Part shown: positions 12,059 to 61,766 of the stretch, piece after piece
How the letters are laid out: each line of letters begins with the position of its first letter
Position numbering within the stretch: the stretch's first letter is position 1
Assembly: GCA_002269645.1 (NCBI GenBank)
Contig: NIVC01000426.1
Span: forward strand, 372,001-436,000
DNA length: 64,000 nt
Reading direction: 5' to 3'
DNA from: Macrostomum lignano
Lineage: Eukaryota
The notes under the pieces: model-generated
Databases searched by the model: none
What the model saw: the letters and a program-made list of their open reading frames with translations, nothing else
Told to the model about the DNA's origin: nothing
Position numbers and translations under genes: made by a program

Positions 12059-15000
12059 ATGTCTCCCTCCTACCTGATGCAGCACTGCGGCCAGCGAATT
12101 CTCGTGACAGGCCTCCGCAGCGGCGGTCGGCCACCCCAGCCGGCGCTGATTCTGCTACGAAATCTGTCTCGACGTCGGCTAACTTCGCCGAAGTCCACTT
12201 ATTCGTCAAGCAGCAGTTCCTCGACGTCAACTAGCAGCGCTGGCAGGCGGCTGATCCGCGGCGGAGTCACCTGCGCCGGGCTCGGACTGGCGACCTTCGC
12301 TGTTGGCCGGGTGTCCCTGTACGAGCGGCTCAAGGGTGAGGGGCGGAATGTCTTCACTGTCCTGTGCATTACTGACACTGTCCTGTGCATTACTGACACT
12401 GTCCCATGCATTACTGACACTGTCCTGTGCATTACTGACACTGTCCTGTGCATTACTGACACTGTCCTGTGCATTACTGACACTGTCCTATGCATTACTG
12501 ACACTTTTCCATGCATTACTGACACTGTCCCATGCATTACTGACACTGTCCTGTGCATTACTGACACTGTCCTGTGCATTACTGACACTTTTCCATGCAT
12601 TACTGACACTGTCCCATGCATTACTGTCACTGTCCCATACATTACTGACACTGTCCCATGCATTACTGACACTGTCCCATGCATTACTGTCACTGTCCTG
12701 TGCATTACTGACACTGTCCCATGCATTACTGACACTGTCCCATGCATTACTGTCACTGTCCCATGCATTACTGTCACTGTCCTGTGCATTACTGACACTG
12801 TCCCATACATTACTGACACTGTCCCATGCATTACTGACACTGTCCCATGCATTACTGTCACTGTCCCATGCATTACTGTCACTGTCCTGTGCATTACTGA
12901 CACTGTCCCATACATTACTGACACTGTCCCATGCATTACTGACACTGTCCCATGCATTACTGTCACTGTCCTGTGCATTACTGACACTGTCCTGTGCATT
13001 ACTGACACTGTCCTGTGCATTACTGACACTGTCCTGTGCATTACTGACACTGTCCTGTGCATTACTGACACTGTCCCATGCATTACTGACACTGTCCTGT
13101 GCATTACTGACACTGTCCTGTGCATTACTGTCACTGTCCCATGCATTACTGACACTGTCCTGTGCATTACTGACACTGTCCTGTGCATTACTGTCACTGT
13201 CCCATGCATTACTGACACTGTCATATGCATTACTGTCACTGTTCCAATCGATAATTTCAGGAACGGCAGGCGGTCTGATTGGTGACGGCGGCCTGGACGT
13301 CCGGCGCTGGTTGCCAAGCGATTGGCGCCACTATCCCATGCACGCCTACGCACTGATTGGAGTCAATGCAATTGTTTTCCTGCTGTGGCAGCTGCCAGCC
13401 GCTCGGCCTGTGCTGAACCGCTGGGCAATGCTGTGGCCTAGCCGGCTTGGCCCCCTGTCGCTCATTGGATCCATGTTCAGTCACCAGCACTGGCTGCACC
13501 TGCTAGTTAACATGCTTGTACTGCACAGTTTTGCACCGGCTCTGACAGCTCAGTTGGGATCTCCCGAAGAGTTCCTCTGTCTGTACGCCTGCTCGGGTGA
13601 GGCTTCTGCTGAATTTTTTATCTATATATTATCTTTTTGTTTCAGCATAATTATTAAACTTTGCACTGACTTTACAATCACTTTAAAGCAAAGCCTCCCT
13701 TCAGGTTCTTCTAACTCTTTCATGGCCTACCATCAACTCCCAATTGTTTCTTAGCATCTTAGCAATCCCCCATGAGCCTGGACATCTCAGCAATCCCCCA
13801 TGAGCCTGGACATCTCAGCAATTCCCCCATGAGCCTAGACATCTCAGCAATTCCCCCATGAGCCTGGACATCTCAGCAATCCCCCATGAGCCTGGACATC
13901 TCAGCAATTCCCCCATGAGCCTAGACATCTCAGCAATTCCCCCATGAGCCTGGACATCTCAGCAATCCCCCATGAGCCTGGACATCTCAGCAATTCCCCC
14001 ATGAGCCTGGACATCTCAGCAATCCCCCATGAGCCTGGACATCTCAGCAATTCCCCCATGAGCCTGGACATCTCAGCAATCCCCCATGAGCCTGGACATC
14101 TCAGCAATTCCCCCATGAGCCTAGACATCTCAGCAATTCCCCCATGAGCCTTGACATCTCAGCAATTCCCCCATGAGCCTAGACATCTCAGCAATTCCCC
14201 CATGAGCCTTGACATCTCAGCAATTCCCCCATGAGCCTTGACATCTCAGCAATTCCCCCATGAGCCTGGACATCTCAGCAATTCCCCCATGAGCCTTGAC
14301 ATCTCAGCAATTCCCCCATGAGCCTGGACATCTCAGCAATTCCCCCATGAGCCTTGACATCTCAGCAATTCCCCCATGAGCCTTGACATCTCAGCAATTC
14401 CCCCATGAGCCTGGACATCTCAGCAATTCCCCCATGAGCCTGGACATCTCAGCAATTCCCCCATGAGCCTGGACATCTCAGCAATTCCCCCCATGAGCCT
14501 GGACATCTCAGCAATTCCCCCATGAGCCTGGACATCTCAGCAATTCCCCCCATGAGCCTGGACATCTCAGCAATTCCCCCCATGAGCCTGGACATCTCAG
14601 CAATTCCCCCCATAAGCCTGGACATCTCAGCTATTCCGTCTCCAAGATATTTATTTATAAAATATCAATAAGCAGCTCAGTGGTAAACGCGGAACTCTCG
14701 CGCCACGACCCCTGGTTCGATTCGGTGCGTGACCACATCAATTTACCGTGAGGGTGTCATGATGTTGTGTTGTTTTGTGTACAGTATTGGCGAGCTTGAA
14801 TGTGCTCAGCAGTCAGTGGAATAGGCAGAATTGCCTCAGCTCTGCTAGGGTGTCCACAGCACTCCTGCAAATATGTATCACGAATGTATGAATGTCTGAT
14901 ATAGCAGCTGAGGAGAACGTCTGACAAAGCAGATAATACTCGTAGTAGGCTTGTGATGAAGGCGCCTCAATTTAAAAGTTGATATTTAAATGTCGGTATG

Positions 15001-15585: not shown

Positions 15586-15963
15586 CTGGATATTGCTACT
15601 CTATCCGCTGCTGGATTGCTAGTCTATCCGCTGCTGGATTGCTAGTCTATCCGCTGCTGGATTGCTAGTCTATCCGCTGCTGGATTGCTAGTCTATCCGC
15701 TGCTGGATTGCTAGTCTATCCGCTGCTGGATTGCTAGTCTATCCGCTGCTGGATTGCTAGTCTATCCGCTGCTGGATTGCTAGTCTATCCGCTGCTGGAT
15801 TGCTAGTCTATCCGCTGCTGGATTGCTAGTCTATCCGCTGCTGGATTGCTAGTCTATCCGCTGCTGGATTGCTAGTCTATCCGCTGCTGGATTGCTAGTC
15901 TATCCGCTGCTGGATTGCTAGTCTATCCGCTGCTGGATTGCTAGTCTATCCGCTGCTGGATTG
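15586..15963 (+). repeat. 23-bp tandem repeat (GCTGCTGGATTGCTAGTCTATCC) just downstream of the PARL stop codon
   Basis: Direct observation; about 16 near-perfect copies. Confidence 0.95.
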
Positions 15964-16070
15964 CGTTTTGTATAGCTTTCTAATAGACATTCTCTTAGAC
16001 TTGATGATGCTTGAGCTTCGCCAGGGTTTGTGGCTTGGGCTTGGCTGGCCGCTACCCTTTCACAGTCGGT

Positions 16071-16589
16071 CCTCAGTTGCCGGGCCAGCCTCCCAGATCC
16101 TCAGTTGCCGGGCCAGCCTCCCAGATCCTCAGTTGCCGGGCCAGCCTCCCAGATCCTCAGTTGCCGGGCCAGCCTCCCAGATCCTCAGTTGCCGGGCCAG
16201 CCTCCCAGATCCACAGTTGCCGGGCCAGCCTCCCAGATCCTCAGTTGCCGGGCCAGCCTCCCAGATCCTCAGTTGCCGGGCCAGCCTCCCAGATCCTCAG
16301 TTGCCGGGCCAGCCTCCCAGATCCTCAGTTGCCGGGCCAGCCTCCCAGATCCTCAGTTGCCGGGCCAGCCTCCCAGATCCTCAGTTGCCGGGCCAGCCTC
16401 CCAGATCCTCAGTTGCCGGGCCAGCCTCCCAGATCCTCAGTTGCCGGGCCAGCCTCCCAGATCCTCAGTTGCCGGGCCAGCCTCCCAGATCCTCAGTTGT
16501 CGGGCCAGCCTCCCAGATCCTCAGTTGCCGGGCCAGCCTCCCAGATCCTCAGTTGTCGGTTCATCGCCGCCCTCCCGGATCCTCAGGCT
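16071..16589 (+). repeat. Second array of the 28-bp satellite (variant CAGTTGCCGGGCCAGCCTCCCAGATCCT), about 18 units
   Basis: Same monomer as 1476..9450 but fixed for the GCCGGG variant. Confidence 0.95.
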
Positions 16590-19487: not shown

Positions 19488-22050
19488 CTAGGGTGGCTGC
19501 ATAGTATCGTCCTGGCTCGGCTCATCAATAGCACCCTTGTAGATGCGGTTCGGTCCAAGGACACTATCCGCGCCAGACATGGACTCAACCGCAGGAAATG
19601 GCCGACTAGACACCATCGGAGTTGATGTCGCTATTCCTCCCGAGCATTCGGCATCATCTGCTAGCCCTGTTCCGTAGGGTCGCTTGCCGATCAGTTCTTG
19701 AATGCGATCGTCCAGCGACCTCATTCGCCTTTCGATGCTCTGCTGAGAAGAGCTCGGCGATTCCGACCCACCGTCCGGTGTACCCGGCGCCCTGCTAGAC
19801 AACTCTGCGTCTGCAGTTGTTAATGAGCTGTAGCTCTCAACAAACTGATGAGGCTCGCCCAGCTGCTTAGCTCTGGCGTCCAGCAGTGCAATCTGACTAT
19901 TGATCATCTTTCTGGATGCCGCATCTAGCCAATGGCTTGCGGAGACATTGTTGCGTCTGTCCGAACAGTCTTGAGGCTCTGTGGCCAGGCCTTGGCCGCA
20001 GACGCAACAAAGGCTGTCCGAAGCCAGATCTACGGCATTTGGCCTGTTGTCCAGGCGGCCGATTCTAGCATTCAATTTGTCCAATCTGTCTAGAAGTAGT
20101 CGCACCTCGGATCTGCTGTGCTGCAGCTCTTTGGCTAAATTGGCATTGGCTTGTTGGAGTCGGCTATTCTCTGCAGTCAGTGACTTTATCTGGTCAATTA
20201 GGGACTGGATTTCTCTGTCCTTGTCCTTCAGAGATGACAACCGGTCTGCTCTACCACCGCTTTCTATTGGCGATTCACGACGCTCGGTGACTTGGGCCTG
20301 TTGGAAGTTGAGAAAGTTGGTTTATTCTTCGTCGGGTCCTCTTCCTCCTCTGTTACTGAGGTTGGTCCTCTTCTTTCTCTCTGTCACTGAGGCTGGTCCT
20401 CTCCCTCCCTTCTGTCACTGAGGTTGGTCCTCTCCCTCCCCTCTGACACTGAGGCTGGTCCTCTCCCTCCCTTCTGTCACTGAGGTTGGTCCTCTCCCTC
20501 CCCTCTGACACTGAGGCTGGTCCTCTCCCTCCCCTCTGTCACTGAGGCTGGTCCTCTCCCTCCCTTCTGTCACTGAGGTTGGTCCTCTCCCTCCCTTCTG
20601 TCACTGAGGTTGGTCCTCTTCTTTCTCTCTGTCACTGAGGCTGGTCCTCTTCTTTCCCTCTGACACTGAGGTTGGTCCTCTTCTTTCCCTCTGACACTGA
20701 GGTTGGTCCTCTTCTTTCTCTCTGTCACTGAGGCTGGTCCTCTTCTTTCTCTCTGTTACTGAGGTTGGTCCTCTTCTTTCTCTCTGTCACTGAGGCTGGT
20801 CCTCTCCCTCCCTTCTGTCACTGAGGTTGGTCCTCTTCTTTCTCTCTGTCACTGAGGCTGGTCCTCTCCCTCCCCTCTGACACTGAGGTTGGTCCTCTTC
20901 TTTCTCTCTGTCACTGAGGCTGGTCCTCTCCCTCCCTTTTGTCACTGAGGTTGGTCCTCTTCTTTCTCTCTGTCACTGAGGCTGGTCCTCTCCCTCCCTT
21001 TTGTCACTGAGGTTGGTCCTCTTCTTTCTCTCTGTCACTGAGGTTGGTCCTCTTCTTTCTCTCTGTCACTGAGGCTGGTCCTCTCCCTCCCTTCTGTCAC
21101 TGAGGTGGTCCTCTCCCTCCCCTCTGACACTGAGGTTGGTCCTCTTCTTTCTCTCTGTCACTGAGGTTGGTCCTCTTCTTTCTCTCTGTCACTGAGGCTG
21201 GTCCTCTCCCTCCCTTCTGTCACTGAGGTTGGTCCTCTCCCTCCCCTCTGACACTGAGATTGGTCCTCTTCTTTCTCTCTGTCACTGAGGCTGGTCCTCT
21301 CCCTCCCCTCTGACACTGAGATTGGTCCTCTTCTTTCTCTCTGTCACTGAGGTTGGTCCTCTTCTTTCTCTCTGTCACTGAGGCTGGTCCTCTCCCTCCC
21401 TTCTGTCACTGAGGTTGGTCCTCTCCCTCCCCTCTGACACTGAGATTGGTCCTCTTCTTTCTCTGTCACTGAGGTTGGTCCTCTTCTTTCTCTCTGTCAC
21501 TGAGGCTGGTCCTCTCCCTCCCTTCTGTCACTGAGGTTGGTCCTCTCCCTCCCCTCTGACACTGAGATTGGTCCTCTTCTTTCTCTCTGTCACTGAGGCT
21601 GGTCCTCTCCCTCCCTTTTGTCACTGAGGCTGGTCCTCTCCCTCCCTTTTGTCACTGAGGTTGGTCCTCTTCCTCCTCTGTTACTGAGGTTGGTCCTCTT
21701 CTTTCTATCTGTCACTGAGGCTGGTCCTCTCCCTCCCTTTTGTCACTGAGGCTGGTCCTCTCCCTCCCTTTTGTCACTGAGGTTGGTCCTCTTGTTTCCT
21801 TTTGTCACTGAGGTTGGTCCTCTTCCTTCCATCTGTCACTGAGGTTGGTCCTCTCCCTCCTCCCTTTCTCTGAGGTTAGTCCTCACTAAAAACGCCAAGT
21901 AGAAAACCTGACCTGCTGCCCTGAGCCAACAACAGCTTGAAGCGAAGTTTCCTCATCAGTGGGGATGATGTTGCCAGCGCCGCTGCTTCCGCTGCCTTCG
22001 TTTCCATGGGTGATGCCATCTGACCTCGTTTGCTCACCAGGATTTTCCAT
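19488..22050 (-). CDS. Uncharacterised coiled-coil protein (about 315 aa); exons 22050..21913 and 20297..19488
   Basis: ATG exon MENPGEQ...GSGQQ (46 codons) ends at CAG|GTCAGG. Acceptor TTCCAACAG|GCC is phase 0 and leads into the long ORF with heptads (EIQSLIDQIKSLTAENSRLQQANANLAKELQHSRSEVRLLLDRLDKLNARI). No family recognised. Confidence 0.7.
20335..21885 (+). repeat. 31-bp pyrimidine-rich tandem repeat (CACTGAGGTTGGTCCTCTTCTTTCTCTCTGT / CACTGAGGCTGGTCCTCTCCCTCCCTTCTGT) in the coiled-coil gene intron
   Basis: Direct observation; two interspersed monomer variants. Confidence 0.95.
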
Positions 22051-22224: not shown

Positions 22225-22526
22225 GGTGGTTGTAGCTTAGTGGATAGAGCGTCGGACTCGCGACTTGAAGGTCGGAGGTTCGATTCCCAATCCCACTGGG
22301 ACAATTTGTGTCCTTGAGCAAGACACTTAGCTATGCATTGCTTCAGTTCACACTGCTGTAAAATGGGTGCCAGCATTAGCTGGGGTAATTGAGGCTGTGT
22401 GTGTGGCGATCCTCAGTCCTTGGACTGAACAACCATATAATAGCTGCGGCTCAGCTGTCAATTGCACATCTGGCCCAATCGGGCCAGGAGTCATTAATTA
22501 TCAATACTAATAATTATTATTATTAT
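22225..22526 (+). mobile_element. tRNA-derived CORE-type SINE, copy 2
   Basis: Colinear with 831..1144 (A/B boxes, CORE, (TAT)n tail), with a short internal deletion in the 3' part. Confidence 0.8.
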
Positions 22527-24076: not shown

Positions 24077-27000
24077 ATGTTGCATCTGCGGCCGAATCTG
24101 ACCCCACTGCTGCTCCTGCTAATCACTGCTCTGATGTCGGACGCTCAATCACCAAGTCCGCCTCCTAGTGGCGGCGGCAGCTCCATGCTGGAGTTGCTGA
24201 TGCGAATGCGGAACCCCGACGATGGCAGCGGCAGCGGTGTCGGAAACAGCAGCGGCAGCGCCTCCGACAGCGTGATCTCGCGCTACATGGCGAAAATGCG
24301 CACCAGAGGAGCCAACGGCAACAGCAGCAGCAGCGGCAGCAGCAGCAGCGGCCGCGTCGGCAAGGGCCATCCTGATTTCGACTCGAGCTACCTGAGCAGC
24401 ATCCAAAAGGTTACGGGCGGCAACGATGAATCAGTGGTGCAGTATGGCTTGTTCGTGTACAGCAACTACCAAGGATTTCTGGCGTGAGTCCTAGTGAAAT
24501 ATTGATTGCCAGTAGTTAGAGGACTTTAAATCTGTAGAAGCTTCCTGTAAGGCTCGCGGCTTCAAATGATATTTTCAATTTTTAATGCCTCGCTGAACTC
24601 GAGAGAAGACTAATTTTCTTCAGCGACGAAGTTGAGGGATGAGATGAGGCTCGCTGAGATTGAGGCTCGCTTCTCTGCGCTTCCGTGACATCGAATTTTG
24701 TTACTTCTCGCTCATTTTTCTTCCCATCCTATCTGTAAACAAGGCGGCGGCGGCGGCAATCAGGCCTCTGCATGCACTTTCTAGGCCCGCCCACGCAACG
24801 ACTCTCTGCAGGCTGTGCGACCTTAGCCAGGCGCACTGGCAAGCTAAATTATGTTCTCCAGTCATTTGCCGGCTAGCCAGCCAATTCGAATGGACTGACG
24901 CAAAACCGGGATATTTTTATCATGAATTGTCTGTCCATGCTTCTTTAGTCTGTGATTATATTATAATCTTCATGAAACCCTTTCCTCCCCTTCTTCTCCT
25001 CTCAGTCTCACAGCAACCTCGCACCCTGCCCTTTCCTCTCCCCTCAGTGTCACAGCCACTTCACTCCCTGCCCTTTTCTCTCCCCTCAGTGTCACAGCCA
25101 CTTCACTCCCTGCCCTTTCTTCTCCCCTCAGTGTCACAGCCACCTCACTCCCTGCCCTTTTCTCTCCCCTCAGTGTCACAGCCACTTCACTCCCTGCCCT
25201 TTCCTCTCCCCTCAGTGTCACAGCCACCTCACACACTGCCCTTTCCTCTCCCCTCAGTGTCACAGCCACCTCGCACACTGCCCCTTTCTTCTCCCCTCAG
25301 TCTCACAGCCACCTCACTCCCTGCCCTTTCCTCTCTCCTCAGTCTCACAGCCACCTCACTCCCTGCCCTTTCCTCTCTCCTCAGTCTCACAGCCACCTCG
25401 CACACTGCCCCTTTCTTCTCCCCTCCAGTCTCACAGCCACCCCATGCTTTCACAGCGCGTTTCAAATTCTCAGCAACAGTCGCATATCATCTAATCTCTA
25501 CCCCGCCCCCGAACCCCAGTCCGTCGACCACCCCGCTGCAAGTGCAGGCGCACGTATCGCCGCTGCACCTGTCCCGACGGTCCGATCAGCAGCGGCAAGA
25601 CTCGCTGACAGCTCGCCTGACCCTGCGACTCTACTGGCGCGACGCCCGGCTGGCATTCAACAACACGCGCGTCTCTCGGGTTCAGCTGTACCATACATTT
25701 CTCAAAAAGTTATGGAAGCCGAGTATTCAGTTCTTAACCGCGACAGGCCAGCAGGACTTCGCGGTGGTCATGGCAACTGTGGATGCAGACGGTCTGGTTA
25801 CTCTGACGCAGCGTCTAAACGTGGGCTTGGAATGCGCTGAGAATCAGGTAGCATGATTTTAATTATTTTTCTATTATTTGTCTAGATAATTACCCCCTTA
25901 GAGAAGTGATTTTTGCTAAAACCCATGATTATTAAGACAAATAAGACCAACTCATAGGTGCAAATTCTACACAGGCCACTCATCCCTCAGTTTTAGCAGT
26001 CACCTCACGCCTTCCCCCACCCCCTAGTATTTGCAGCCACTTCACGCCTTCCCCCACCCCTCATTATTTGCAGCCACCTCACGCCTTCCCCACCCCTCAG
26101 TTTTTGCAGCCACCTCACGCCTTCCCCACCCCTCATTCCTTGCAGCCACCCACGCCTTCCCCAACCCCTCATTCCTTGCAGCCACCCCACGCCTTCCCCA
26201 ACCCCTCATTCCTTGCAGCCACCCCACGCCTTCCCCGACCCCTCATTCCTTGCAGCCACCCCACGCCTTCCCCCACCCCTCATTATTTGCAGCCACTTCA
26301 TGCCTTCTCCAACCCCTCAGTTTCTGCAGCCACCTCACGCCTTCCCCCACCCCTCATTCCTTGCAACCACCCCACGCCTTCCCCAACACCTCATTCCTTG
26401 CAGTCACCCCACGCCTTCCCCAACACCTCATTCCTTGCAGTCACCCCACGCCTTCCCCAACACCTCATTCCTTGCAGTCACCCCACGCCTTCCCCCCACC
26501 CCTCATTATTTGCAGCCACATCACGCCTTCCCCAACCCCTCATTCCTTGCATCGACCTTGCGCCTTCTCCTGCCAGAACTCTAGCTTTTGAAGTACAATA
26601 ACTAAATGTACATATCGGTAAAGCTTCAAGGCTAGATAAAAATCCAAACCCAATCCCTCAGCTGCACCTGCTCCCGCTGGACACTCTGAAGTGCGACGCA
26701 ACATTAAGCGTTAGCACCGCGTCCCAGTCTCAGCAAAAGCTCGACTGGTTACTGCCTGGCAACGCCTCTTTCAATTGGCCAATCGGCAGTCAGGTCAGCG
26801 ACTTGATTCTGACAGACGTGCAATTTCTGGACGGGAACGCTCGAGAGGAGATGGCCAGTCTGACGCTTCGGCTAAAATTGCGCCGTCAGTTGGCGCGCTT
26901 CTTGGTTGCCGCCTACGCGCCTAGCGCGCTGCTTGTGGCGCTGTCGGCTTGCAGCTTGCGCTCCGGCCGGTCCGGCATGTGCGCCGGCTGCGCTGCTGGC

Positions 27001-27989: not shown

Positions 27990-28713
27990 CAGATGAGGCA
28001 GAGGCTGTGTACCAAATAGGGGACGTCAAGTAGCCTCTTAGGAAGGCCGCTGCAACCGCTAGTTGTGAAATTTTTTCTGCAAAATGCATCTATATCAAGA
28101 TTAGGAAGTTTTCAGCTTTGAACAAATGATCACTGTTCCTATTTTAGTGAGAGCCCATTAAAAGCTCCGAAACTTCCTATCTTACTACTGCATTATGCAA
28201 GCAAGAACAAGACAAGAACTGGAAAAGGCTTTTCTCTATCCATTTTCTAGAAACTAATCATTTCTATTTGTTTTAACTCGTTAAACATCCTCCCGAAGTC
28301 CCGTCCGACTGTTAACGAACGGCGTACCGACCCCGATTTCTCCGAGGAACAGAGGGAAACCTAATTTTGTTATTTACGAGTAACTTAACAACGAATTTCG
28401 CAATAAAAGTGGCAGTTGGATTATCGCGATCATTGACAGTTCGAATAATTTGATATAAGTTACAAACCCTAGCAACAATCAATTGGCTGCATGATGAAGG
28501 CCTTAGTTATTAATTGTTTAACTTAAGGTTGTGCAAGTGTACAAGGTCTACTAAAGCTTGAAGTTTCTGTCCAAGCCAAGAGCGGGGTCCCCTACCTCAA
28601 CGTGGAGAAGATGGCCGCCACAAGACTCCGCATCGTCTGCTGGAAGGCGAGAGTTCGCCTAAGCAAAAATGCAGCTGATCAATTGCTACTATCAATTTTC
28701 TTTGATTTCTAAG

Positions 28714-28863
28714 ATGCGCAGATCCTTGCTGTACTGCAGCGCAAGGCCTACGCGTGGACCAGGTCGTGTGAACACGATGCACTGGCCCGACTCATCAAAA
28801 ACCGGATTAATTACTTGGTAGACCAATGGCCTACGTTAGAGGAATTAATCTCTAAAGAACAGA
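28714..28863 (-). pseudogene. RNU2: U2 snRNA 3' part (from TCTGTTCTT to the 3' end), distal copy
   Basis: Minus strand: TCTGTTCT, stem IIa TTAGAG-ATTAATTC-CTCTAA, CG, stem IIb TAGGCC-ATT-GGTCTA, stem IIc partner AATTAATC, Sm-like GGTTTTTGA, stem III GGGCCAG..TCGTG-TTCA-CACGA..CTGGTCC, stem IV GCGTAGG-CCTTG-C-GCTGCAGTAC-AG-CAAGG-A-TCTGCGC with the conserved YGCAGUAC loop. Confidence 0.88.
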
Positions 28864-30380
28864 GCGAAAGGCCCTGCCCGTCGGCCGAGTATCCGACGGT
28901 CGGGCAATATATTTAAGTATTTAAACGATGCGATATGAGCGGAAATATTTGGCCAAGAGCCTGATGATGCTACTGAGAGTAGCTAAAAACGGGTTCGCAG
29001 GATGCGTAAAACAGTAAAACATTGAAGTAAATGCAATTAAAACAGTGGGAAAAAGTGAAGGCGCAGGAGACGGGGTGGCGGCGGGGATGAGCGCGAGAGG
29101 CGGAATCACAGCGAAAAGTGCTAACAGAGTGCATGAACTTCGAGACAGTAAAAAGTAAAATATTAAAGAAAAACAAAGTAAAACAAAAATGCAGAGTGGA
29201 AGATAAATAAAACAGGTAAAAGTAAAGGTAACAGGGTGGGCTGAGATGAGCAGAGTTTGGCAGAGTTCGGCACAAAATCAGTGGATTTGAGGTGCGCCGG
29301 TGCAGTGCTCCACCCACGTGTTGCGGCTCCAGTGGATGCAGTGCAGCGCCAGTCGTCGTTGGAGGTGCCGGATGTCGCGCTCGCGCAGGCCTGCAGCGCG
29401 CAGGATGGCGCTGTTGAAAGGCGACCAGGCGCCCAGCGAGCCGATGCAGAAAGTAGCCAGGGCCGTTGGCGCCTCTGCGCTGAGCTGCTGCGTGATGCCG
29501 GCGTACTTCTGGCATACGGCTCGGTGCTTGCGTGGGAACGTGGCCGGCCCGACCTCGAACGGCGACTTGACTTCGATCAGGAGACGGCGGCCTCTGTCTG
29601 GATCCATGATGCTGATGTCAGGTCGCAGATCAGAGCCGGGAAGGACCTCCTGGTCGGTGGTGATGGTCGCGTTTGGGCGGGCCTCGCTGATGGCGGTGGC
29701 GACGGCGTTGACGATGCCGTCGTGGCGGTCCCTCCACCTGGCCGCGTGCACCGGGCAGCTGTTGATGACGTGGCCGAGCGTCTCGACGCCGGCTCCGCAG
29801 CGGCGGCATCGCGGGTCGGATGTCGGGTCGGCCAGTCTCCGGAGCGCGTTGGTGGGCACCAGGTTGAGCCGCGCTCGGTGGATGAAGCGCCAGTCGCAGG
29901 CGCGCATGCCGGTGCTGCTGAACAGCCAGGTGTGGCTGCCGATGTGCGTGGCAGTCGTGGCGCATCGGCCTTGGGAGTGGCACCCGCGCCAGGCCGCCGT
30001 GTGCGCTGCCCTGACCACCTGGTGAAGCCTCCGGGTGATTGCTGCCGCTCTGTCACAGCGCTGGATTGTTCCGGACAGCGGGTCGCGCCACTCCAGGCTG
30101 GCCGTCCAGTCGTTGCTGATGGTGAAGCGCAGCCCGGTCGCGTGGAGCACTTCGCGGGTGGCGTGGCGGACTTGGAACCACCAGCTGGCCGTTTCTCCGC
30201 TGGGTGGCAGTGCTGCGCCATTGAGGAAATCGGCGACGTCGCGAGGTCGGACAGGTGCAGCCCGGAGCCGTAGGCGGCGTTGGACCAGACCGCGCAGTTC
30301 GGCCCAGGCTAGCTCTCTGAGCGCGGCGTCGGTGCAGCAGAGTCGCCTGACGGCCTCGGTGACCTTCTGGACGGCTGCCT
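28864..30380 (-). mobile_element. 5'-truncated non-LTR retrotransposon with restriction-like endonuclease (NeSL group, Utopia-like), copy B
   Basis: The ORF ending at 29278 encodes a CCHC knuckle (CRRCGAGVETLGHVINSC), RHDGIV, PD-(D/E)xK endonuclease (LRPDIS...IEVKSPF), KY and GSLGAW. A T-rich 3' UTR of about 410 nt ends exactly at U2 TCTGTTCTT. Confidence 0.88.
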
Positions 30381-30473
30381 CAAGACTCCGCATCGTCTGC
30401 TGGAAGGCGAGAGTTCGCCTAAGCAAAAATGCAGCTGATCAATTGCTACTATCAATTTTCTTTGATTTCTAAG

Positions 30474-30632
30474 ATGCGCAGATCCTTGCTGTACTGCAGC
30501 GCAAGGCCTACGAGCCGTACGCGTGGACCAGGTCGTGTGAACACGATGCACTGGCCCGACTCATCAAAAACCGGATTAATTACTTAGTAGACCAATGGCC
30601 TACGTTAGAGGAATTAATCTCTAAAGAACAGA
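30474..30632 (-). pseudogene. RNU2: U2 snRNA 3' part, proximal copy (carries a 9-nt insertion at the base of stem IV)
   Basis: Nearly identical to 28714..28863, with one substitution and an extra GAGCCGTAC (+ strand) near 30512..30520. Confidence 0.88.
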
Positions 30633-31833
30633 ACGAAAGGCCCTGCCCCTCGGACGAGCTACCGAGAGTGGGGGCAATATATTTAAGTATTAAAGGAAAT
30701 TAGTAGGCGAGGACAGATGATTGTAAAGGCGACGGCGAGCGAGGGCTCATGCAAAAGAAATAGAGCGGCGAAAGTTAAAGCAAATTGAGCAGAATAAAGC
30801 GTTTCAAAAGAATTTTAGAAGACAACGGGAAGCGGGATAAAAAGGGGAGTGGCAGTAAAAGCAGACGAAAACAAAAGGATGAAATAAAAAAGAAATAAAA
30901 TAAAATAGACCAAAATGGATAAAAAAAAAAGGATGGGTGAGAGAGTATTAAATGCAAAATAGATAAATGAGATATAAAGGTGGTGAAAACAGGCGCGGAC
31001 GTCCCAAAAGGAGCAACGGGCAATAATTAGGGTCAGAAAGCGCGGAGACCCAAAACGGTCAGGCGAAGGCACAGGCACAGGTGCATCAGAAAGCTTGCGG
31101 GGCGCCCGTGCAGTGCTCCACCCACGAATTGCGGCTCCAGTGGATGCAGTGGAGCGCAAGCTGGCGCTGGAGGCTGCGAATGACGCGCTCGGCGAGCCCG
31201 GCCGCACGCAGGATGGTGTTGTTGTGCGGCGACCAGGAGCCAAGCGCTCCGACACAAAGAGTCGCCAGGGCCGTAGGTGCGTCCTCCTTCAGCCGCTGGG
31301 TCAGGCCAGCGTATTTCTCGCAGACGGCCCGGTGCTTACGCGAATAGGTAGTCGGGCCGGCCTCCATCGGTGTCTTGACTTCGATCAGCAGGCGCCGTCC
31401 TCGAGCCGGGTCCTCGACGCTGATGTCGGGACGGAGGCCAGAACCAGGCAGCACCTCCTGATCGTTGAGCACCGTCGCAGTCGGACAGGCCTTCTGGATG
31501 GCACCGGCGATCGCGCTGACGACGCCGTCGTGGCGGTCTCTCCATCGTCCCGCATGCACAGGGCAGGCGCTAAGGACATGACCGAGGGTCTCCGCCTCAG
31601 CGCCGCATCGCCTGCAGCGGGCGTCGGCTGTCGGGTCAGCGAGCCGCCGCGTCACATTCGTTGGAATGAGGTTGAGGCGGGCGCGATGTACGAAGCGCCA
31701 GTCACACACGCGCATCCCGGTGCTGTTGAACAGCCAGGTGTGCCCGCCGATGTGTGTCGCCGTCGTCGCGAAGCGGCCCTGGGAGCGGCATTGGCGCCAC
31801 GCCGATGTGTGCGCCGATCTGACGACCTCGTGC
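30633..31833 (-). mobile_element. 5'-truncated Utopia-like RLE retrotransposon, copy A (a different subfamily from B)
   Basis: The ORF ending at 31086 encodes CRRCGAEAETLGHVLSAC, RHDGVV, LRPDIS...IEVKTPM and GALGSW. The 3' UTR of about 450 nt ends at U2 TCTGTTCTT, and the 5' end abuts the U2 5' fragment. Confidence 0.88.
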
Positions 31834-31842
31834 AGCCAATAA

Positions 31843-31872
31843 TGATCTTAGCCAATAAGGCCGAGAAGCGAT
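31843..31872 (-). ncRNA. RNU2: U2 snRNA 5' end (nt 1-30) of the interrupted gene
   Basis: Minus strand reads ATCGCTTCTCGGCCTTATTGGCTAAGATCA, against canonical U2 ATCGCTTCTCGGCCTTTTGGCTAAGATCA. Confidence 0.92.
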
Positions 31873-32282
31873 AAGGATTATTGTAACAGAAACCAATCTA
31901 TTTTAAATAACTGAGCCGTACACTAGTCAGAGGCCCTTGTTTTCGTAGCACCTACCATCTTGTTCACTAAACTTGAATAAATAGTGTTCAATGTGTAAAT
32001 ATCGTACAGAAACGGACCGGTAATACTAAAAAAATTCTTATTTTAAAATGAAGTGACAAAACAAATTATTTTATAAAATCTAAAAATCTAATTTCAATTT
32101 TAAACAATTTATATACACTATCGAACTATTTTGACCCAAAAGGAATGCGCAAATAGCTCTACTGTAAGTATGAGGACGCAATTATATGCAATTTTAACTA
32201 TTGCTGACTCAAACCGTTGGGGCAACTTGGGACGGGAGTTTTCGATTGGTGGAAAGCGGAGAGGCAGGACTGGGGTCCCGCA

Positions 32283-32613
32283 GGGTTGGTTTCAACTTCA
32301 CAACCGCTAAAAATTTTGCACATACTTTCATATACTGCAGTCTTTTTAGCGGTTGTGAAGTTTCGCGGTTATGAAGTTTCGCGGTTGTGAAAGTAGATGA
32401 CTTTAGCGGTTGTGAAGTTTCGCGTTTGTGAAGTTTCGCGCTTATGAAAGTGGGTGATTTAGCGTTGTGAAGTTTCGCGTTTGTGAAGTTGCGCGTTTAT
32501 GAAAGTGACTGCAAAAAAATTAGCGGTTGTGAAGTTTCGCGGTTATGAAGTTTCGCGGTTGTGAAAGTAAATGATTTAGCGGTTGTGAAATTTCGCGTTT
32601 GTGAAAGCAACCC
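32283..32613. mobile_element. MITE with 12-bp TIR (GGGTTG[G/C]TTTCA), 8-bp TSD GTCCCGCA and internal GCGGTTGTGAAGTTTC subrepeats
   Basis: TSD at 32275..32282 and 32614..32621. An inverted subterminal motif (CTTCACAACCGCTAA) lies near the left end. An 8-bp TSD fits hAT or Merlin. Confidence 0.82.
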
Positions 32614-34246: not shown

Positions 34247-36690
34247 TCAATCAACCTCCTCCATCTTGGCGTCGTCGTCAGCGGCAGCCGAGTCGCCAGC
34301 AGTGGCTGGCATCGGCTGATCGACAGCTTCGGGTTCGTCGGCGGCGTCCTCAATGCCAAGGCCCAGCTTCACCATGCGATGGATGCGGCCGGCGTGGATC
34401 TGCGGATCGTCCAAGCTGAAGCCGGAGGCCAGCAGGGCGGTCTCGAACAGCAGGTGCACCAGATCCTTCACCGCCTTGTCGTTCTTGTCAGCCTCGAAGC
34501 GCAGCTTGAGAGCGGAGCAGATGGCGTGGTCAGGGTTGATCTCCAGGTGCTTCTTAGCCGCCATGTAGCCCATTGTGGAGTTGTCGCGCAGAGCCTGAAA
34601 TTGGTTTTGTTGGTAAAAATTCACGGTTATATCTTAATTGCTAAAACACCGATTTATCTGAAAACTACTAGCAGTAGTTTTAAGGACTAAAATTTGACAA
34701 AATAGATCGAGTTCACCTACCTGTGCCTTCATGATCCGCTCCATGTTGGCCGACCAGCCGAACTGCGAGGTGACGATGCAGCAAGGCGAGTCAACCAGCC
34801 GGTTGGACACGACCACCTTCTCGACCTTCTTGTCCAGGATGTCCTTCATAGCCTTGCACAGCGGCTCGAAGGCGGCCTTCTTTTCTTCGAACGCTTTCTT
34901 CTCGTCCTCGTCCTCGGGCAGCTCAAGGCCCTCCTTGGTGACGCAGACGAGCTTCTTGCCGTCGTACTCGCGCAACTGCTGCACAGCGTACTCGTCGATT
35001 GGGTCAGTCATGTACAGCACCTCCAGGCCGCGCTTTCGCAGTCTCTCAACAAATGCGGAGTGAGAGACGGCCTCCCGGCTCTCGCCGGTGATGTAGTAGA
35101 TGTCCTTCTGGTTCTCCTTCATGCGGCTGACGTACTCCTTCAGGCTGGTCCAGTCGTCGCCGGAGTTGGTAGAGTAGTAGCGCAGGTAGTCGGCCAGCTT
35201 CTTGCGGTTGGTGCTGTCCTCGTGGATGCCCAGCTTCAGGTTCTTGCCAAACTGCTCGTAGAACTTCTTGAAGTTCTCCTTGTCCTCGGCGATGTCGTCG
35301 AACAGTTCCAGGCACTTCTTCACGAGATTCTTTCGAATGACCTTGAGGATTTTGTTCTGCTGCAGCATCTCACGGCTGATGTTGAGCGGCAGGTCTTCGC
35401 TGTCCACTACGCCCTTGATGAAGTTGAGGTACTCGGGGATCAGGTCCTCGCAGTTGTCCATGATGAAGACCCGTCGCACGTACAGCTTGATGTTATTACG
35501 CTTCTTCCGGTTCTCGAACAGGTCGAACGGCGCCCGCTTCGGGACAAAAAGCAGGGCGCGAAACTCGAGCTGGCCCTCAACGCTGAAGTGCTTCACGGCC
35601 AGGTGCTCCTCCCAGTCGTTGCTGAGCGACTTGTAAAACTCGCCGTACTCCTCCTGGGTGATGTCCTCGTGGTTGCGGGTCCAGATTGGCTTCGTCTTGT
35701 TCAGCTCCTCCTCGTCGATGTACTTCTCCTTGACAGTCTTCTTCTTTTTCTTCTTCTTGTCCTTCTCCGAGTCGCTGCCTTCGTCGTCGCTGCTTTCGTC
35801 GTCCTCGATCTTCGGCTTGTCGGTCTCGTCGGACTTCTCGTCGGCCGGCTTCTCGGAGTCTTCGTCCATCTTCTCAGGCTTTGAGTCCTCCTCAACTTCG
35901 GCTTCATCGTCTTCAATCTGGAAATGAAGGAATGTTACCGACAGGTGAGATCATTGAACGATTAACAGGATGCCGACACACTAATTAATTGTCTCTTGAC
36001 TGATCAACTTACCTCCTTATCGCGCTCCTTCTCGAGCACCAGCTTGATAGGATAGCCGATAAACTGGGAGTGCTTCTTGATGATCTCCTTGATCTTGCGC
36101 TCCTCCAGGTACTCGGTCTGGTCCTCCTTCATGTGCAGGACAATCTTGGTGCCGCGACCAATGGGTTCGCCAGTGTCGGGCCGGACGGTGAAGCTGCCGC
36201 CGGCGGAGGACTCCCAGGCGTACTGCTCGTCGTCGTTGTGCTTGGAGTAGACCTCAACCTTGTCGGCCACCAGGTAGGCCGAGTAGAAGCCAACGCCGAA
36301 CTGGCCGATCATGCTGATGTCAGCGCCCGCCTGCAGCGCCTCCATGAACGCCTTGGTGCCAGATCTGGCGATGGTGCCCAGATTGTTAACTAGATCAGCT
36401 TTAGTCATGCCGACTCCGGTGTCAACGATGGTCAGGGTGTTGTTAGCCTTGTTGGGGATCACCTTGATGTACAGCTCTCGGCCGGTGTCCAGCACGGACT
36501 GATCCGTCAGGCTTCTGTACCGAATTTTGTCCAAGGCGTCGCTGGCATTCGAGATCAACTCGCGGAGGAAGATCTCCTTGTTCGAGTAGAAGGTGTTAAT
36601 AATTAAGCTCATCAGCTGAGCGATCTCAGCCTGAAAAGCAAAAGTCTCCACCTCCTGCTGCTGGTTGATTTCGACCTCGTTGATAGTCAT
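34247..36690 (-). CDS. HSP90: Cytosolic heat shock protein 90 (Hsp83/HSP90A), 740 aa; exons 36690..36013, 35917..34721, 34594..34247
   Basis: [54 protein letters not shown], the charged linker and a C-terminal MEEVD. Both introns are phase-0 GT-AG. Confidence 0.98.
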
Positions 36691-39561: not shown

Positions 39562-42500
39562 TCAGAGCATATCATCGCTCCACTGGAACGGCTCCGGCGG
39601 CGGCGGCTCCGGCAGGTCGTCCTCTTTTGAGTTCGCCGAAGTTGGGCCGTGCGCCTTCACGGTTGGCACCAGGGACTCCTTCTCGTCTGGCCGACGGTCG
39701 CGCAGCATTATAATGCCGCCAATGGTGACGCTCTTCACCGGCTGGTAGCGGCCGCCTTCAAGCGTCACGAGACGCTGCTGGGCTCGCATAACCCGGCACG
39801 GATTGGACAGCAGGCTAAAGTTTGGCTCGGGCCCGGGCTTGTCCGTTGAGGTGCCAGTAGAAACTGTGGCGGGCTTATCAGTCAGGGTTCCCTGGCTCTT
39901 CGAAGCCGGCGCCGGCTCCTTTGTTGACGTCTCAGTTGAGGCGGCGGCGGCGGGGGCGGCAGCGGCTGTGGTGGCACTGGAAGTCTCGCTACTGGCTGGA
40001 GTCTCCTTGCCCTCCGGGATTGACGGAACTGGAGCGGCGGCGGGGCCAGAAGCCGAAGTTGCAGTCGCAGCAGCCGCAGTTGTGGAGCCGCCCGGCTGAT
40101 GAGCCGTAGCTGCCGCTGTTTTCTTCTTCTCCTGCTCCTTGCGCTTCTGCTTGGCCGTGATGCTGAGCACGGCGGTCTCGACTTTTTCTTTCTTCTTCTC
40201 CACCTGGGTCACTGAATATGGCAAAGGGAATTGCGCGATAGATTTTTAAACTGTGGCCCAACGCATTCACTACCTATAAGCCAATCCCTGAACTCAACAC
40301 ACACCTGTAAACCAATCCCTGAACTCAACACACACCTGTAAACCAATCCCTGAACTCAACACACACCTGTGAACCAATCCCTGAACTCAACACACACCTG
40401 TAAACCCATCCCTGAACTCAACACACACCTGTAAACCAATCCCTGAACTCAACACACACCTGTAAACCAATCCCTGAACTCAACACACACCTGTGAACCA
40501 ATCCCTGAACTCAACACACACCTGTAAACCCATCCCTGAACTCAACACACACCTGTAAACCAATCCCTGAACTCAACACACACCTGTAAACCAATCCCTG
40601 AACTCAACACACACCTGTAAACCAATCCCTGAACCCAACACACACCTGTAAACCAATCCCTGAACCCAACACACACCTGTAAACCAATCCCTGAACCCAA
40701 CACACACCTGTAAACCAATCCCTGAACCCAACACACACACCTGTAAACCAATCTCTGAACCCAACACACACCTGTAAACCAATCCCTGAACTCAACACAC
40801 ACCTGTAAACCAATCCCTGAACTCAACACACCTATAAACCAATCCCTGAACTCAACACACCTATAAACCAATCCCTGAACTCAACACACCTATAAACCAA
40901 TCCCTGAACTCAACACACCTATAAACCAATCCCTGAACTCAACACACCTATAAACCAATCCCTGAACTCAACACACACCTATAAACCAATCCCTGAACTC
41001 AACACACACCTATAAACCAATCCCTGAACTCAACACACCTATAAACCAATCCCTGAACTCAACACACCTATAAACCAATCCCTGAACTCAACACACACCT
41101 ATAAACCAATCCCTGAACTCAACACACCTATAAACCAATCCCTGAACTCAACACACCTATAAACCCATCCCTGAACTCAACACACCTATAAACCAATCCC
41201 TGAACTCAACACACCTATAAACCAATCCCTGAACTCAACACACCTATAAACCAATCCCTGAACTCAACACACCTATAAACCCATCCCTGAACTCAACACA
41301 CCTATAAACCAATCTCTGAACTCAACACACCTATAAACCCATCCCTGAACTCAACACACACCTATAAACCAATCCCTGAACTCAACACACCTATAAACCC
41401 ATCCCTGAACTCAACACACCTATAAACCCATCCCTGAACTCAACACACCTATAAACCCATCCCTGAACTCAACACACACCTATAAACCAATCTCTGAACT
41501 CAACACACACCTGTAAACCAATCCCTGAACTCAACACACACCTGTAAACCAATCCCTGAACCCAACACACACCTGTAAACCAATCCCTGAACCCAACACA
41601 CACCTGTAAACCAATCCCTGAACCCAACACACACCTGTAAACCAATCCCTGAACCCAACACACACACCTGTAAACCAATCTCTGAACCCAACACACACCT
41701 GTAAACCAATCCCTGAACTCAACACACACCTGTAAACCAATCCCTGAACTCAACACACCTATAAACCAATCCCTGAACTCAACACACCTATAAACCAATC
41801 CCTGAACTCAACACACCTATAAACCAATCCCTGAACTCAACACACCTATAAACCAATCCCTGAACTCAACACACCTATAAACCAATCCCTGAACTCAACA
41901 CACACCTATAAACCAATCCCTGAACTCAACACACACCTATAAACCAATCCCTGAACTCAACACACCTATAAACCAATCCCTGAACTCAACACACCTATAA
42001 ACCAATCCCTGAACTCAACACACCTATAAACCAATCCCTGAACTCAACACACCTATAAACCAATCCCTGAACTCAACACACCTATAAACCCATCCCTGAA
42101 CTCAACACACCTATAAACCAATCCCTGAACTCAACACACCTATAAACCAATCCCTGAACTCAACACACCTATAAACCAATCCCTGAACTCAACACACCTA
42201 TAAACCCATCCCTGAACTCAACACACCTATAAACCAATCTCTGAACTCAACACACCTATAAACCCATCCCTGAACTCAACACACACCTATAAACCAATCC
42301 CTGAACTCAACACACCTATAAACCCATCCCTGAACTCAACACACCTATAAACCCATCCCTGAACTCAACACACCTATAAACCCATCCCTGAACTCAACAC
42401 ACACCTATAAACCAATCTCTGAACTCAACACACACCTGTAAACCAATCCCTATACTCAACACACACCTGTAAACCCATCCCTGAACTCAACACACACCTG

Positions 42501-45500
42501 TAAACCAATCCCTGAACTCAACACACACCTGTAAACCCATCCCTGAACTCAACACACACCCGAGAAACAAATCCCTGAAACCAAGACCCCTTAAAACCGA
42601 ATCTAAAATACGCGTAACTTTTATCTTAAAATTAATTAGTTCAAAAACTGACCCAGAGGCGGCGGATAATCGAAGGTGCTGGGCTTAGCATTGGAGCGGA
42701 ACTGAACCTGCGGCATTTCCAATGCCTTATTTAGCCCAATCAGGCTGGTAGGCGTGAAGGCCAGGCAGAGGAAATGCGTCAAAGGATACCAGTACCAGAA
42801 CTGCTGGAACACCAGGACGCCAACAGCGGCGGCCATGTTAGACTGGCCAGTCCGGGTCTGCAGGCTGATGGTGACATTGCGACCTCCGGCATCAACAATG
42901 CCAAGGCCGAGAATGGCGCCATGCTTAGCCATCACGTCTTCGTGCTTGTCGGCCACTACTTTTAGGCAGAGTTCGCGAAATTCGCCAGCCTTCGGACTGT
43001 TGACACCGTTCTGTTGGATTAGCACCATGCCCAGCGCGATTAGGGCGCCTTGGCGGACAAAGTGCACAGCGTCCTGCGTCATGGGATCAAGGATGTTGAT
43101 AGCCTCCTTGAGCGCGGTGCCGGCGCAAGCGATGCCCAGAGCCATGGCGGCGCCGTAGCGAACGTGCGGGTTGAATGATTCGGCTAGGAGGGACACGAGG
43201 TCCGGCACCTGAGTGGGGAGAGTGAGGCATTAATATCTAAAGTAGGCTACTCATAGTAGAATGAGTCGGACAGTGCTAAATATATGTTAATATTGAAAAT
43301 CTAAGGGTCTAAATAGACTTCTTAGCGCCACATCGGCCTCTATTTTTCTAAAGCGCCTACTTCTATTGTGGCTTCTAGGGCGCCAAATCGGCCTGTTGGG
43401 ATCTAGGGCACCAAAATAACCTTTTGGGATGGGATCTAAGGCGCCGAATTGGTCTAGGGGTCTAGGGCGCCGAATTGATCTAGGGGTCTAGGGCGCCGAA
43501 TTGGTCTGTTTGAATGGGATCTAGGGCGCCGAATTGGCCTGTTTGAATGGAATCTAGGGCGCCGAATTAGCCTGTTGGGATCTAGGGCGCCGAGTTGATC
43601 TAAGGGGTCTAGGAGGCCAAATTGGCCTGTTTAAATGGAATCTAGGGCGCCGAATTAGCCTGTTTGAATGGGATCTAGGGCGCCGAATTGGCCTGTTTGA
43701 ATGGGATCTAGGGCGCCGAATTGGCCTGTTTGAATGGGATCTAGGGCGCCGAATTAGCCTGTTGGGATCTAGGGCGCCGAATTGGCCTGTTTGAATGGGA
43801 TCTAGGGCGCCGAATTAGCCTGTTGGGATCTAGGGCGCCGAATTAGCCTGTTGGGATCTAGGGCGCCGAGTTGATCTAAGGGGTCTAGGAGGCCAAATTG
43901 GCCTGTTTAAATGGAATCTAGGGCGCCGAATTAGCCTGTTAGGATCTAGGGCGCCAAATTGGCTTGAAAGTTCTAGGGCGGCGAATCGGCCAGTGTGGTC
44001 TAGGAAGCCTAATGGATCCAATGGGTCTGGGGCGCTATCTTGGCCTGAGGGTTTCTAATTTCTCACAAAATAGGAAAATCCGGTCTTTAGGACTCTTTAA
44101 AAGAGTTCAGATGCACAAAATTGTCTATTGACTGACCTGTTCGGGCGATTTAAACAGCACAAAGCCGATGCTAAGCACGGCGGCCCGGCGAACATCGTCG
44201 CTAGTATCGGTGACGGCGTAGTGCAACAGGCGCCGGACAGCAGAATTCGAGCCCGAGCCGCAGTAGGCCATAGCAACAGTGTACACGCCGCTCCATCGCA
44301 GTATGGGATCTTTATCCTCTAGCAGGCTCTGGGCCAGCAGGTCGGCCTCCTCCAGCCGGCCGTACATAGTCAGAGCTACGCCAACAGCCAGGCCTCGGAT
44401 AATTTTATCGTGCTGAGTCTCCTTAGCGTAGGAGACCATGTCTTTAACGGCGGCCGAGCTGCTCGAGCCCAGCATTACTAGGCCCATAGCTAAGCCGGCC
44501 GCTTCGCCAACAATAGCATCGTCCTGGTATAGGCTCAGCTTAATAGCCTCGTAAACATCCTGCCTAGCCGTGCCCATAGCGGCCAGGCCCAGGCCCAGAC
44601 AGGCGCCGTGCCTGACTGGTTCAGCGGTGGCTCCGGACAGCTGCTGCAGAAGATAATCGGTCACAGCCGAGCCGTGATTGGCGTGGATCAGGCCCAGTGC
44701 ATATAGGCCGCCGCCCTCCGAATAGGCCGTGGTGCCGGCGCTATTCCTAGGCAGATAGGCGGCCATCAGACGAAGCGACTCGGTCTCGTGGCCCCGATGG
44801 ATACAGCCTAGGCTGGCCGTGGCGGCAAACTTAGCCCAGTTAGTTGCCCGGCCAAGCCACTCCAGATTGTCGCGCAGAAACTGATCGCTAGTGGTGCCGG
44901 CGTGCATGAAGCCGTTAGCGGTCACTGTGGCCGAGTGAGTGATGGAATTGCGCACAGATTCGCGCAGCCGGTCTAGGTAGCGCGCATCGGCTCGGTTATT
45001 ACGGATTAGAAATTGCAGGTGCAGTTGGATTACCTGCAAAGTTATCCAAGTAACAAATACTGACAATGAAACAAACTCAAGTCTACGAAGTTTGCCCGAT
45101 GACATTTGAAAGTCAGACATCTAACATCTAAAACGTCAGCCAGCTAGACGTTTGCCAGCTAGATGTTTGCCAGCTAGATGTTTGCCAGCTAGATGTTTGC
45201 CAGCTAGATGTTTGCCAGCTAACATTTGCCAGCTAGATATTTGCTTTTGCAAGCCAATTGCCAACCAACATAAGTAAAGAGCCAAACTATTGTAATAGAA
45301 AATCCAGCAAAAACGTCTTAACTAATCTAACTAGTAACTACTGATGTTTCCCTCAGCTAAGTAGTGCAACAGCAAGTCTACGTTAAGCTTAGTACACCTC
45401 CTTTATTTAAGAATTAATAGAACACAAAACCCTTCAGTTCCTACCTTCTCTCCCGATAGAATAGTCAACAATCTGGCGAATCTCTCTTTGGCAGCCTCGT

Positions 45501-61140: not shown

Positions 61141-61766
61141 CACTTTTTCAGAGATAGCAGGTCAGTGGAAGATGCACTGAGGCACTAAGTCGTGTAGCGC
61201 CATAAAAAGAAAAGGCTCCCAAGGCTCCAAGGAAGCGGTTGGTCTTGATTTTCGCACAAAAAGACACTGTGAATCGTTATGGAAATGCATGAACAGCAGA
61301 AGCAAGCAATCGGGTTTTTTCTTCTCTGGCTGCAAACTAGCAGCTGAAATATTGGCACATATCCGCTTAAATGGAGGCAGTCGCTGAATTTATAAAAAAA
61401 ACCAAGAAAACAAAGAATTCAAAGAATTTTCTGGACGAAAAAGCAAAGAAATGTTTTTATTCTGAACTTGCTTTATGAAATTCCGTGGCAAACTGCGAGC
61501 TTGGCAAGGCGGTGGAATTTGGGACTGGGTATAGATAATATACAGATTGGCAGTATGGCGGAACCAAAAATACTCTGCGTGAGACACCGCCACATTCTGT
61601 CAGTCAATTTTGGCACCCAATATAAATGGCATTGTGTACGCCTTGTTATTATTGGAATGTTGGCAGAAAACGTTTGCTTTTCTGCAGAGGATTTTGAGGG
61701 GATGGCACACAGGTGCAAGCTCTATTCCCTGCTTTGTGGGACCACGTGGCACTTGCTATAGCCAGA

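Follow-up and report, generated by a model that had tools for sequence, protein, structure and literature searches.

A U2 snRNA gene of the flatworm Macrostomum lignano was found to carry two 5'-truncated retrotransposons, elements A and B, and B lies between two direct copies of a 243-bp block that consists of the 3' part of U2 and the sequence following it. The block is tentatively interpreted as an opportunistic, one-off long target-site duplication (TSD) that would have arisen when B inserted. We regard this as the best single explanation and give it a little less than an even chance. The locus was studied in a window of 64,000 nucleotides (contig NIVC01000426.1 of assembly GCA_002269645.1, positions 372,001 to 436,000), and all coordinates are those of the window. 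The features of the locus are listed in Table 1.

Table 1. Features of the interrupted U2 locus, in the order in which they follow each other 5' to 3' on the minus strand
Feature	Position	Strand	Basis
5' fragment of the U2 snRNA gene, nt 1 to ~29 = ATCGCTTCTCGGCCTTATTGGCTAAGATCA	31843..31872	-	Read from sequence; aligned to intact and Utopia-interrupted insect U2 genes
Element A, 5'-truncated Utopia-like non-LTR retrotransposon	30633..31842	-	76% aa identity to B over 247 aa
Duplicate copy 2: U2 nt 39 to end (30632 to ~30469) and 88-nt 3' flank (30468-30381)	30381..30632	-	Rfam U2, 61.0 bits
Element B, 5'-truncated (1517 bp), Utopia-like	28864..30380	-	ORF, protein matches, alignment with relatives
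Duplicate copy 1: U2 nt 39 to end (28863 to ~28709) and 88-nt 3' flank (28708-28621)	28621..28863	-	Rfam U2, 79.2 bits
Native flank beyond the duplication = GATGGCCGCCA; matches the 5'-most 11 nt of B	28610..28620	.	8/11 positions vs GACGGCTGCCT (30370-30380)

Reading 5' to 3' on the minus strand, U2 nt 1-29 is followed by A, copy 2, B and copy 1, and copy 1 runs on into the native downstream flank. Alignment and exact comparison of the two copies from end to end (243 and 252 nt, the direct repeats being 1.76 kb apart) confirmed what a first-pass annotation of this DNA had described, namely a duplication with one substitution (G28817 in copy 1, A30586 in copy 2) and one 9-nt insertion, which lies in copy 2 (30509-30517). 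Judged from the sequences, an identity this high over the length of the repeat cannot be due to chance. Rfam placed U2 on the minus strand in both copies, true U2 extending only from model position ~39 (UCUGUUCUU...) to 3' ends at ~28709 and ~30469; each copy thus comprises U2 nt 39 to the end (~155 nt) and an 88-nt 3' flank. Both differences are inside the U2 part, and the non-coding flank is 100% identical between the copies.

The limits of the repeat are the two ends of B. On the minus strand each copy begins at U2 nt 39 (28863 and 30632), directly preceded by the 3' end of an element (28864 for B and 30633 for A), and the end of copy 2 at 30381 adjoins the 5' end of B at 30380. The earlier statement that the boundaries fall exactly at B's 3' insertion point and at its 5' junction (28863 and 30381/30380) was correct. 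Both elements join U2 precisely at nt 39, the junction of B being ...CCTTTCGC/TCTGTTCTT (28864/28863) and that of A ...CCTTTCGT/TCTGTTCTT (30633/30632).

At the other end of A, U2 nt 1-29 directly precede the element and nt 30-38 are missing, so the 5' junction of A is local, with a deletion of at most ~9 bp; the first base of A is uncertain within ~7 nt. A 9-mer (TTATTGGCT) occurs twice at this junction (31843-31860, minus strand), as U2 nt 15-23 and again right after nt 29, and may represent microhomology, a short templated insertion or chance. A 29-mer probe for the U2 5' half, used on the window with up to 3 mismatches, gave no match; the fragment ends at nt 29 and the probe overshot it. 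The 30-nt fragment was also below Rfam detection when 31600-32200 was searched at a permissive E-value. A weak Rfam Hammerhead_II match in the same interval is antisense to A and was discarded as probably due to chance.

The ORF of B is open from the 5' junction to the stop codon (30378-29278, 366 codons) and covers the post-RT region, a CCHC finger and the restriction-like endonuclease (RLE); the 3' UTR occupies 29277-28864. The C-terminal ORF of A is likewise open (31835-31086, ~250 codons), encodes a CCHC zinc finger and an RLE, and is followed by a 3' UTR at 31085-30633. Both elements are 5'-truncated downstream of the reverse transcriptase (RT), and tblastn found no RT-coding remnant anywhere in the window. 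With 76% protein and ~75% DNA identity A and B represent two families. Their open frames, taken together with the 0.4% divergence of the repeat copies, are consistent with recent events.

The best protein matches of the elements were 'T26G10.4-like' models (E 1e-46 to 1e-36, 30-35% identity), and these homologues belong to elements that sit in U2 genes. An alignment of A, B and five relatives has the conserved columns C-RRCG...ETL-HV...C, LRPD, (D/E)V..P and K..KY, that is, a C-terminal zinc finger followed by a restriction-like (PD..D/ExK) endonuclease, as in Utopia; the Pfam zf-RVT match was sub-threshold. From these sequence features A and B are classed as Utopia-like, U2-specific, RLE-bearing retrotransposons, the RT being absent from both truncated copies. 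The exact product of the B ORF is not on record in public assemblies, and scans of JGI metagenomes gave no match to a U2 23-mer or to B relatives.

The 3' UTRs of A and B are mostly diverged, with a terminal segment of ~62 nt in common (28864-28925 vs 30633-30694, ~85%, BLAST). This similarity past nt 39 reflects related 3' ends of the two elements and is outside the duplication. Both segments fold into the same hairpin, the 7-bp inner stem of which keeps its pairing through a compensatory G-C to C-G and a C-G to U-G change; it is probably the element recognised by the reverse transcriptase. Rfam mis-aligns the hairpin onto U2 stem-loop I.

Utopia is the name of NeSL-group non-LTR retrotransposons specific for U2 snRNA genes (Kojima & Jurka 2015, PMC4640811). 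A and B share with them the 3' junction at U2 nt 39 and the C-terminal CCHC finger with a PD..(D/E)xK-type endonuclease, and the best-matching 'T26G10.4-like' models occupy the same U2 site in ladybirds and a leaf beetle. The presence of two families in one U2 locus is paralleled in Phytophthora, and 5' junctions vary. In contrast to the published elements, A and B are from a flatworm, Platyhelminthes being absent from the host phyla of 2015 (PMC4640811), and they have only 30-35% amino acid identity to any retrievable relative; their 3' ends do not occur in the junction lists of the supplements to that paper. A further difference is the duplication itself: the published TSD is 0 bp in arthropods and 20 bp in reptiles, whereas B is flanked by 243 bp.

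In the related loci that were examined, those of Harmonia, Coccinella and Gonioctena and one from an ENA assembly (L001, L002, L007 and L008), U2 nt 1-31 to 1-38 stand directly upstream of the element, and the 'T26G10.4-like' ORFs lie between U2 nt 31-38 and nt 39. The nt 39 3' junction was also found in L001, L002 and L008. The Harmonia axyridis locus (OU611930.1, L001) is a U1-U2 cluster, and the 'T26G10.4-like' gene annotated there is a chimera whose model spans a truncated Utopia inserted in a U2 gene. The Gonioctena locus (JAFIRS010000457.1, L008) is a tandem array of ~9.4 kb per unit, with Utopia-occupied U2 units whose flanks are 86-92% identical.

A direct repeat of the target flanks both ends of B and starts at the priming nick, as in a TSD, and the block can be read as one because its limits coincide with the nick (nt 38/39) and with the truncated 5' end of B. 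The first-pass annotation had noticed this geometry, which is the one expected if the top strand is broken 243 nt downstream of the nick at U2 38/39, and had suggested a possible giant TSD. As to the geometry this was right. Such flanking is necessary for a TSD but insufficient, since insertion combined with a deletion in a tandem U2 pair, the reading published for oomycetes (PMC4640811), produces the same arrangement (see below).

The 5' junction of B provides a further clue. The 11 nt of native flank at 28610-28620 agree with the 5'-terminal 11 nt of B in 8 positions. The probability of 8/11 or better is 0.0023 when random pairs are drawn from the window, and within B an equally good match was found at only 7 of 1507 positions, giving P ~0.002-0.005 for the microhomology. 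Junction microhomology is typical of opportunistic end-joining of truncated cDNAs. The position of the junction thus looks as if it had been set by pairing of the cDNA end and not by a defined endonuclease cut.

Assuming a one-off TSD, the following events would account for the locus. B would have inserted into the U2 snRNA gene by target-primed reverse transcription that started at the canonical nick (U2 nt 38/39) and stopped after ~1.5 kb of the RNA had been copied. The B cDNA, its free 3' end left unjoined beside the nick, may then have used the imperfect 11-nt microhomology to anneal 243 nt further downstream to the U2-sense strand, which could have belonged to the same duplex, to a sister copy or to a homologous one, and fill-in synthesis would have placed U2 nt 39 to the end and the 88-nt 3' flank on both sides of B. 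The long TSD would be an opportunistic product of this repair and not of a defined second endonuclease cut. Together with the promoter and U2 nt 1-38, which were left untouched, the upstream copy would have formed a complete U2 gene, and A, a member of a different family, would sit in this rebuilt U2 with its local 5' junction and a deletion of 9 bp or less.

Parts of this scheme had been anticipated. The block does contain the U2 3' half and its flank, and with the U2 5' end upstream it would give a complete gene, as proposed in the first-pass annotation; the host-sparing programme that was proposed along with it found no support. A did use the U2 whose 3' part is copy 2, as indicated by U2 nt 1-29 (31872-31843) directly 5' of A. 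The suggested order of events, B before A, is not required: if an occupied site can be nicked again, A may have come first, and B, re-nicking the A/U2 junction and making a 243-bp duplication, would have led to the same product. A hint that such re-nicking is possible comes from Nasonia, for which tandem Utopia-Utopia junctions have been published. The 9-nt insertion of copy 2 looks as if a short neighbouring stretch had been imperfectly duplicated (CGTA...CGTA when read in the U2 sense); the 3' stem-loops of U2 are disrupted by it, and the Rfam score drops from 79 to 61 bits. If the insertion were older than A, the rebuilt U2 gene would have been impaired.

In a rival reading the element duplicated nothing. 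Two adjacent, near-identical U2 genes may have existed; B would have used nt 38/39 of the downstream one for priming, and its truncated 5' end would have become attached within the 3' flank of the upstream gene. The remaining spacer would have been lost together with the promoter and U2 nt 1-38 of the downstream gene, and A would later have entered the upstream gene. The final geometry would be identical, and the junction microhomology fits equally well. The insect loci examined have their U2 genes in clusters or in tandem, 5'-truncated LINEs often delete target sequence when they insert, and deletion is the explanation preferred for Phytophthora Utopia, where intact U2 genes, and not nt 1-38 fragments, are found upstream in true arrays (PMC4640811). 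However, such an array would need exactly two units, as Rfam found no further U2 in the 64-kb window, that is, within ~28-32 kb on either side. A spacer or promoter remnant is absent: a sensitive BLAST comparison of the downstream flank with the U2 upstream region detected no similarity that could mark a former array unit. The 88-nt flank would also have to be 100% identical between paralogues, whereas neighbouring units in the beetle array L008 differ by 8-14% in their flanks, although homogenisation could explain the identity. Because gene conversion between the repeats could mimic flank identity, we treat the tandem pair as rather unlikely but still as a serious competitor.

The same observations, read from the other side, speak for a one-off TSD: a 100% identical flank compared with 86-92% in L008, no further U2 in the window and no trace of an array unit in the downstream flank. 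The 8/11 microhomology and the open frames of A and B are in line with it, and long flanking duplications made by endonuclease-bearing LINEs have been documented, with 126 bp for R9 (according to the account of it in PMC6895275) and a median of 900 bp for Dualen-4b (PMC9977147). On the other hand, the evidence comes from a single locus with one copy of B (n = 1). Gene conversion can keep repeats 1.76 kb apart identical, so that older paralogous U2 genes are compatible with the identity as well. A 243-bp duplex would have to be opened or bypassed within a single molecule, which is mechanistically demanding; an assembly error may be compatible with the assembled sequence; and the analogous pattern in oomycetes was attributed by Kojima and Jurka to deletion within U2 arrays (PMC4640811).

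The oomycete case resembles the present one in that the 3' part of U2 with its flank is found directly upstream of another Utopia copy (PMC4640811, S3 Fig), that several families occur per cluster, and that there are disrupted 3' fragments without matching 5' fragments. It differs in that Phytophthora has true U2 arrays, in which an intact gene follows the fragment after ~0.9 kb and for which the authors favoured deletion, whereas no array is visible here and a fragment of nt 1-29 is present upstream of A. Kojima and Jurka explicitly left duplication possible for Phytophthora (PMC4640811).

A TSD could also be a regular property of the family. The endonuclease of B, or a second subunit, would then cut the top strand ~243 nt downstream each time, and every insertion would rebuild an intact U2 upstream, sparing the host and regenerating the target. 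The geometry fits, the 88-nt 3' flank within the block is probably enough for snRNA 3'-end formation, and R9 with its fixed 126-bp TSD is a precedent as far as it is described in PMC6895275. Such a mechanism would explain why disrupted U2 3' fragments are far more numerous than intact genes in Phytophthora and why nt 1-38 fragments are missing there, and it would address the persistence of Utopia on a low-copy target. Against it stand the single instance (n = 1) and a junction on microhomology, as for opportunistic joining of truncated cDNA. U2 nt 1-29 directly precede A, whose endonuclease region is 76% identical to that of B, U2 nt 1-31 to 1-38 are found in the same place at the Harmonia, Coccinella, Gonioctena and ENA-assembly loci, and published Utopia TSDs are none in arthropods and 20 bp in reptiles (PMC4640811). 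Inspection by eye revealed no convincing similarity of the +243 site to the primary target site.

Long-TSD behaviour was thus seen neither in A (76% aa) nor in L001, L002, L007 and L008. Since A and the four related loci have a U2 5' fragment directly upstream, a programmed giant TSD does not appear, as far as these sequences go, to be a trait of the lineage of A, B and the related loci. The suggestion of the first-pass annotation that the duplication may be programmed, a property of the family, found no support: there is a single instance, with 8/11 microhomology, A has a local junction, and four other Utopia loci have U2 nt 1-31 to 1-38 directly upstream. We consider a programmed TSD very unlikely for B. 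A TSD-like origin nevertheless is the best single explanation of the block, the one-off form being slightly short of an even bet and the programmed form contributing a small additional share.

Three other routes, a composite insertion, a rearrangement after insertion and an assembly mis-join, seem improbable even when taken jointly. In a composite insertion the RT would have switched template from truncated B RNA to a read-through co-transcript of U2, A, U2 and flank. R2-type reverse transcriptases are known to jump templates (template jumps are discussed in PMC6895275), promoterless elements are probably co-transcribed with U2, and the microhomology would fit an internal landing on an acceptor RNA extending past +243. 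But a donor locus with A and an identical 88-nt flank is required, and the jump must be internal and not end-to-end. A rearrangement meets the difficulty that homologous unequal exchange cannot create the non-homologous junction between flank and B; homologous unequal crossover was rejected for this reason. So was 3' transduction by A, which would need priming at the 5' end of B, where there is no U2 target. As to a mis-join, one indel and one substitution separate the copies, and the elements next to them are only 75% identical, which argues against a trivial assembly duplication.

Long flanking duplications are known from other elements. The 126-bp TSD of R9, named in the first-pass annotation as a precedent, is correctly stated according to PMC6895275. 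As described there, R9 of bdelloid rotifers (Gladyshev & Arkhipova 2009), which is specific for 28S rDNA, resembles B in being site-specific, in using an RLE and in making a very long duplication of a structural-RNA target. It differs, by the same account, in that the TSD length is fixed on all copies, and is therefore programmed, whereas B is one truncated copy with junction microhomology; target and clade are also unlike those of A and B. Dualen-4b_cRei, which was observed as de novo insertions in Chlamydomonas mutation-accumulation lines, makes long target duplications of variable length (median 900 bp) that were read as the result of widely spaced nicks (PMC9977147), which shows that LINE integration can give rise to duplications hundreds of bp long. 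In contrast to A and B, Dualen has APE and RLE endonucleases and is not U2-specific, and its events were seen directly as new mutations.

The surroundings of the locus were also inspected. About 0.5 kb upstream of the U2 start there is a 57-bp tandem repeat (32345-32605) made up of 16-nt subrepeats (TTCGCGGTTGTGAAGT), accompanied by a 42-nt inverted repeat with arms at 32294-32335 and 32495-32536; the tandem repeat could be an snRNA enhancer-like array or a plain minisatellite. An HSP90 gene (34347-36690, minus strand) with at least two short introns lies ~2.5 kb from the U2 locus. Its protein is 96% identical to Macrostomum lignano HSP90 and the DNA 81-91%; when three Macrostomum lignano HSP90 loci were examined as a source of an empty site, they had coding similarity only, with no synteny and no U2, so that the gene in the window may be a divergent paralogue. 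A gene for the 26S proteasome subunit RPN2 (RPN2_N and PC repeats, best database matches 42-50% identity) was found at 44125-46479 on the minus strand.

Minisatellite arrays with periods of 15-45 bp pack the window (1474-9443, 12355-14637, 15592-16559, 20335-21884, 24987-26551, 40272-42579, 49879-51969, 54845-55791 and 60182-63281), examples being a 28-bp unit repeated 285 times and a 31-bp unit repeated 77 times with strong strand skew. Most of the long 'ORFs' of the window, including an 'extensin-like' one at 61610-63292, are artefacts of these repeats. A weak tRNA match on the plus strand (22226-22295; 31.9 bits against a cut-off of 29 bits) has several mispaired stem positions and may be a tRNA pseudogene or a tRNA-derived repeat.

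How U2-specific retrotransposons maintain themselves on a target that is essential and present in few copies is acknowledged to be a puzzle (PMC4640811, section 11). If family B of the flatworm regularly made a ~240-bp TSD of U2 nt 39 to the end with the 3'-processing flank, which we think improbable, each insertion would regenerate a functional U2 and a fresh target, amounting to a self-renewing, host-sparing strategy. This would explain the intact U2 upstream of Utopia in oomycetes, the many 3' fragments and the lack of 5' fragments, and would account for the survival of several Utopia families on about 10 target genes. The 243-bp duplication of the present locus, a single case, is probably an accident of 5'-end repair; it is unusual for Utopia and, as R9 and Dualen illustrate, not new in kind. 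The direct repeats of 243 bp would make the insertion precisely reversible by homologous recombination. The locus extends the Utopia-like group to flatworms. Whether oomycete Utopia insertions delete or duplicate was left undecided in PMC4640811, and the present case, in which the duplication on either side of a Utopia-type element would restore the gene, suggests that the duplication route is at least possible.
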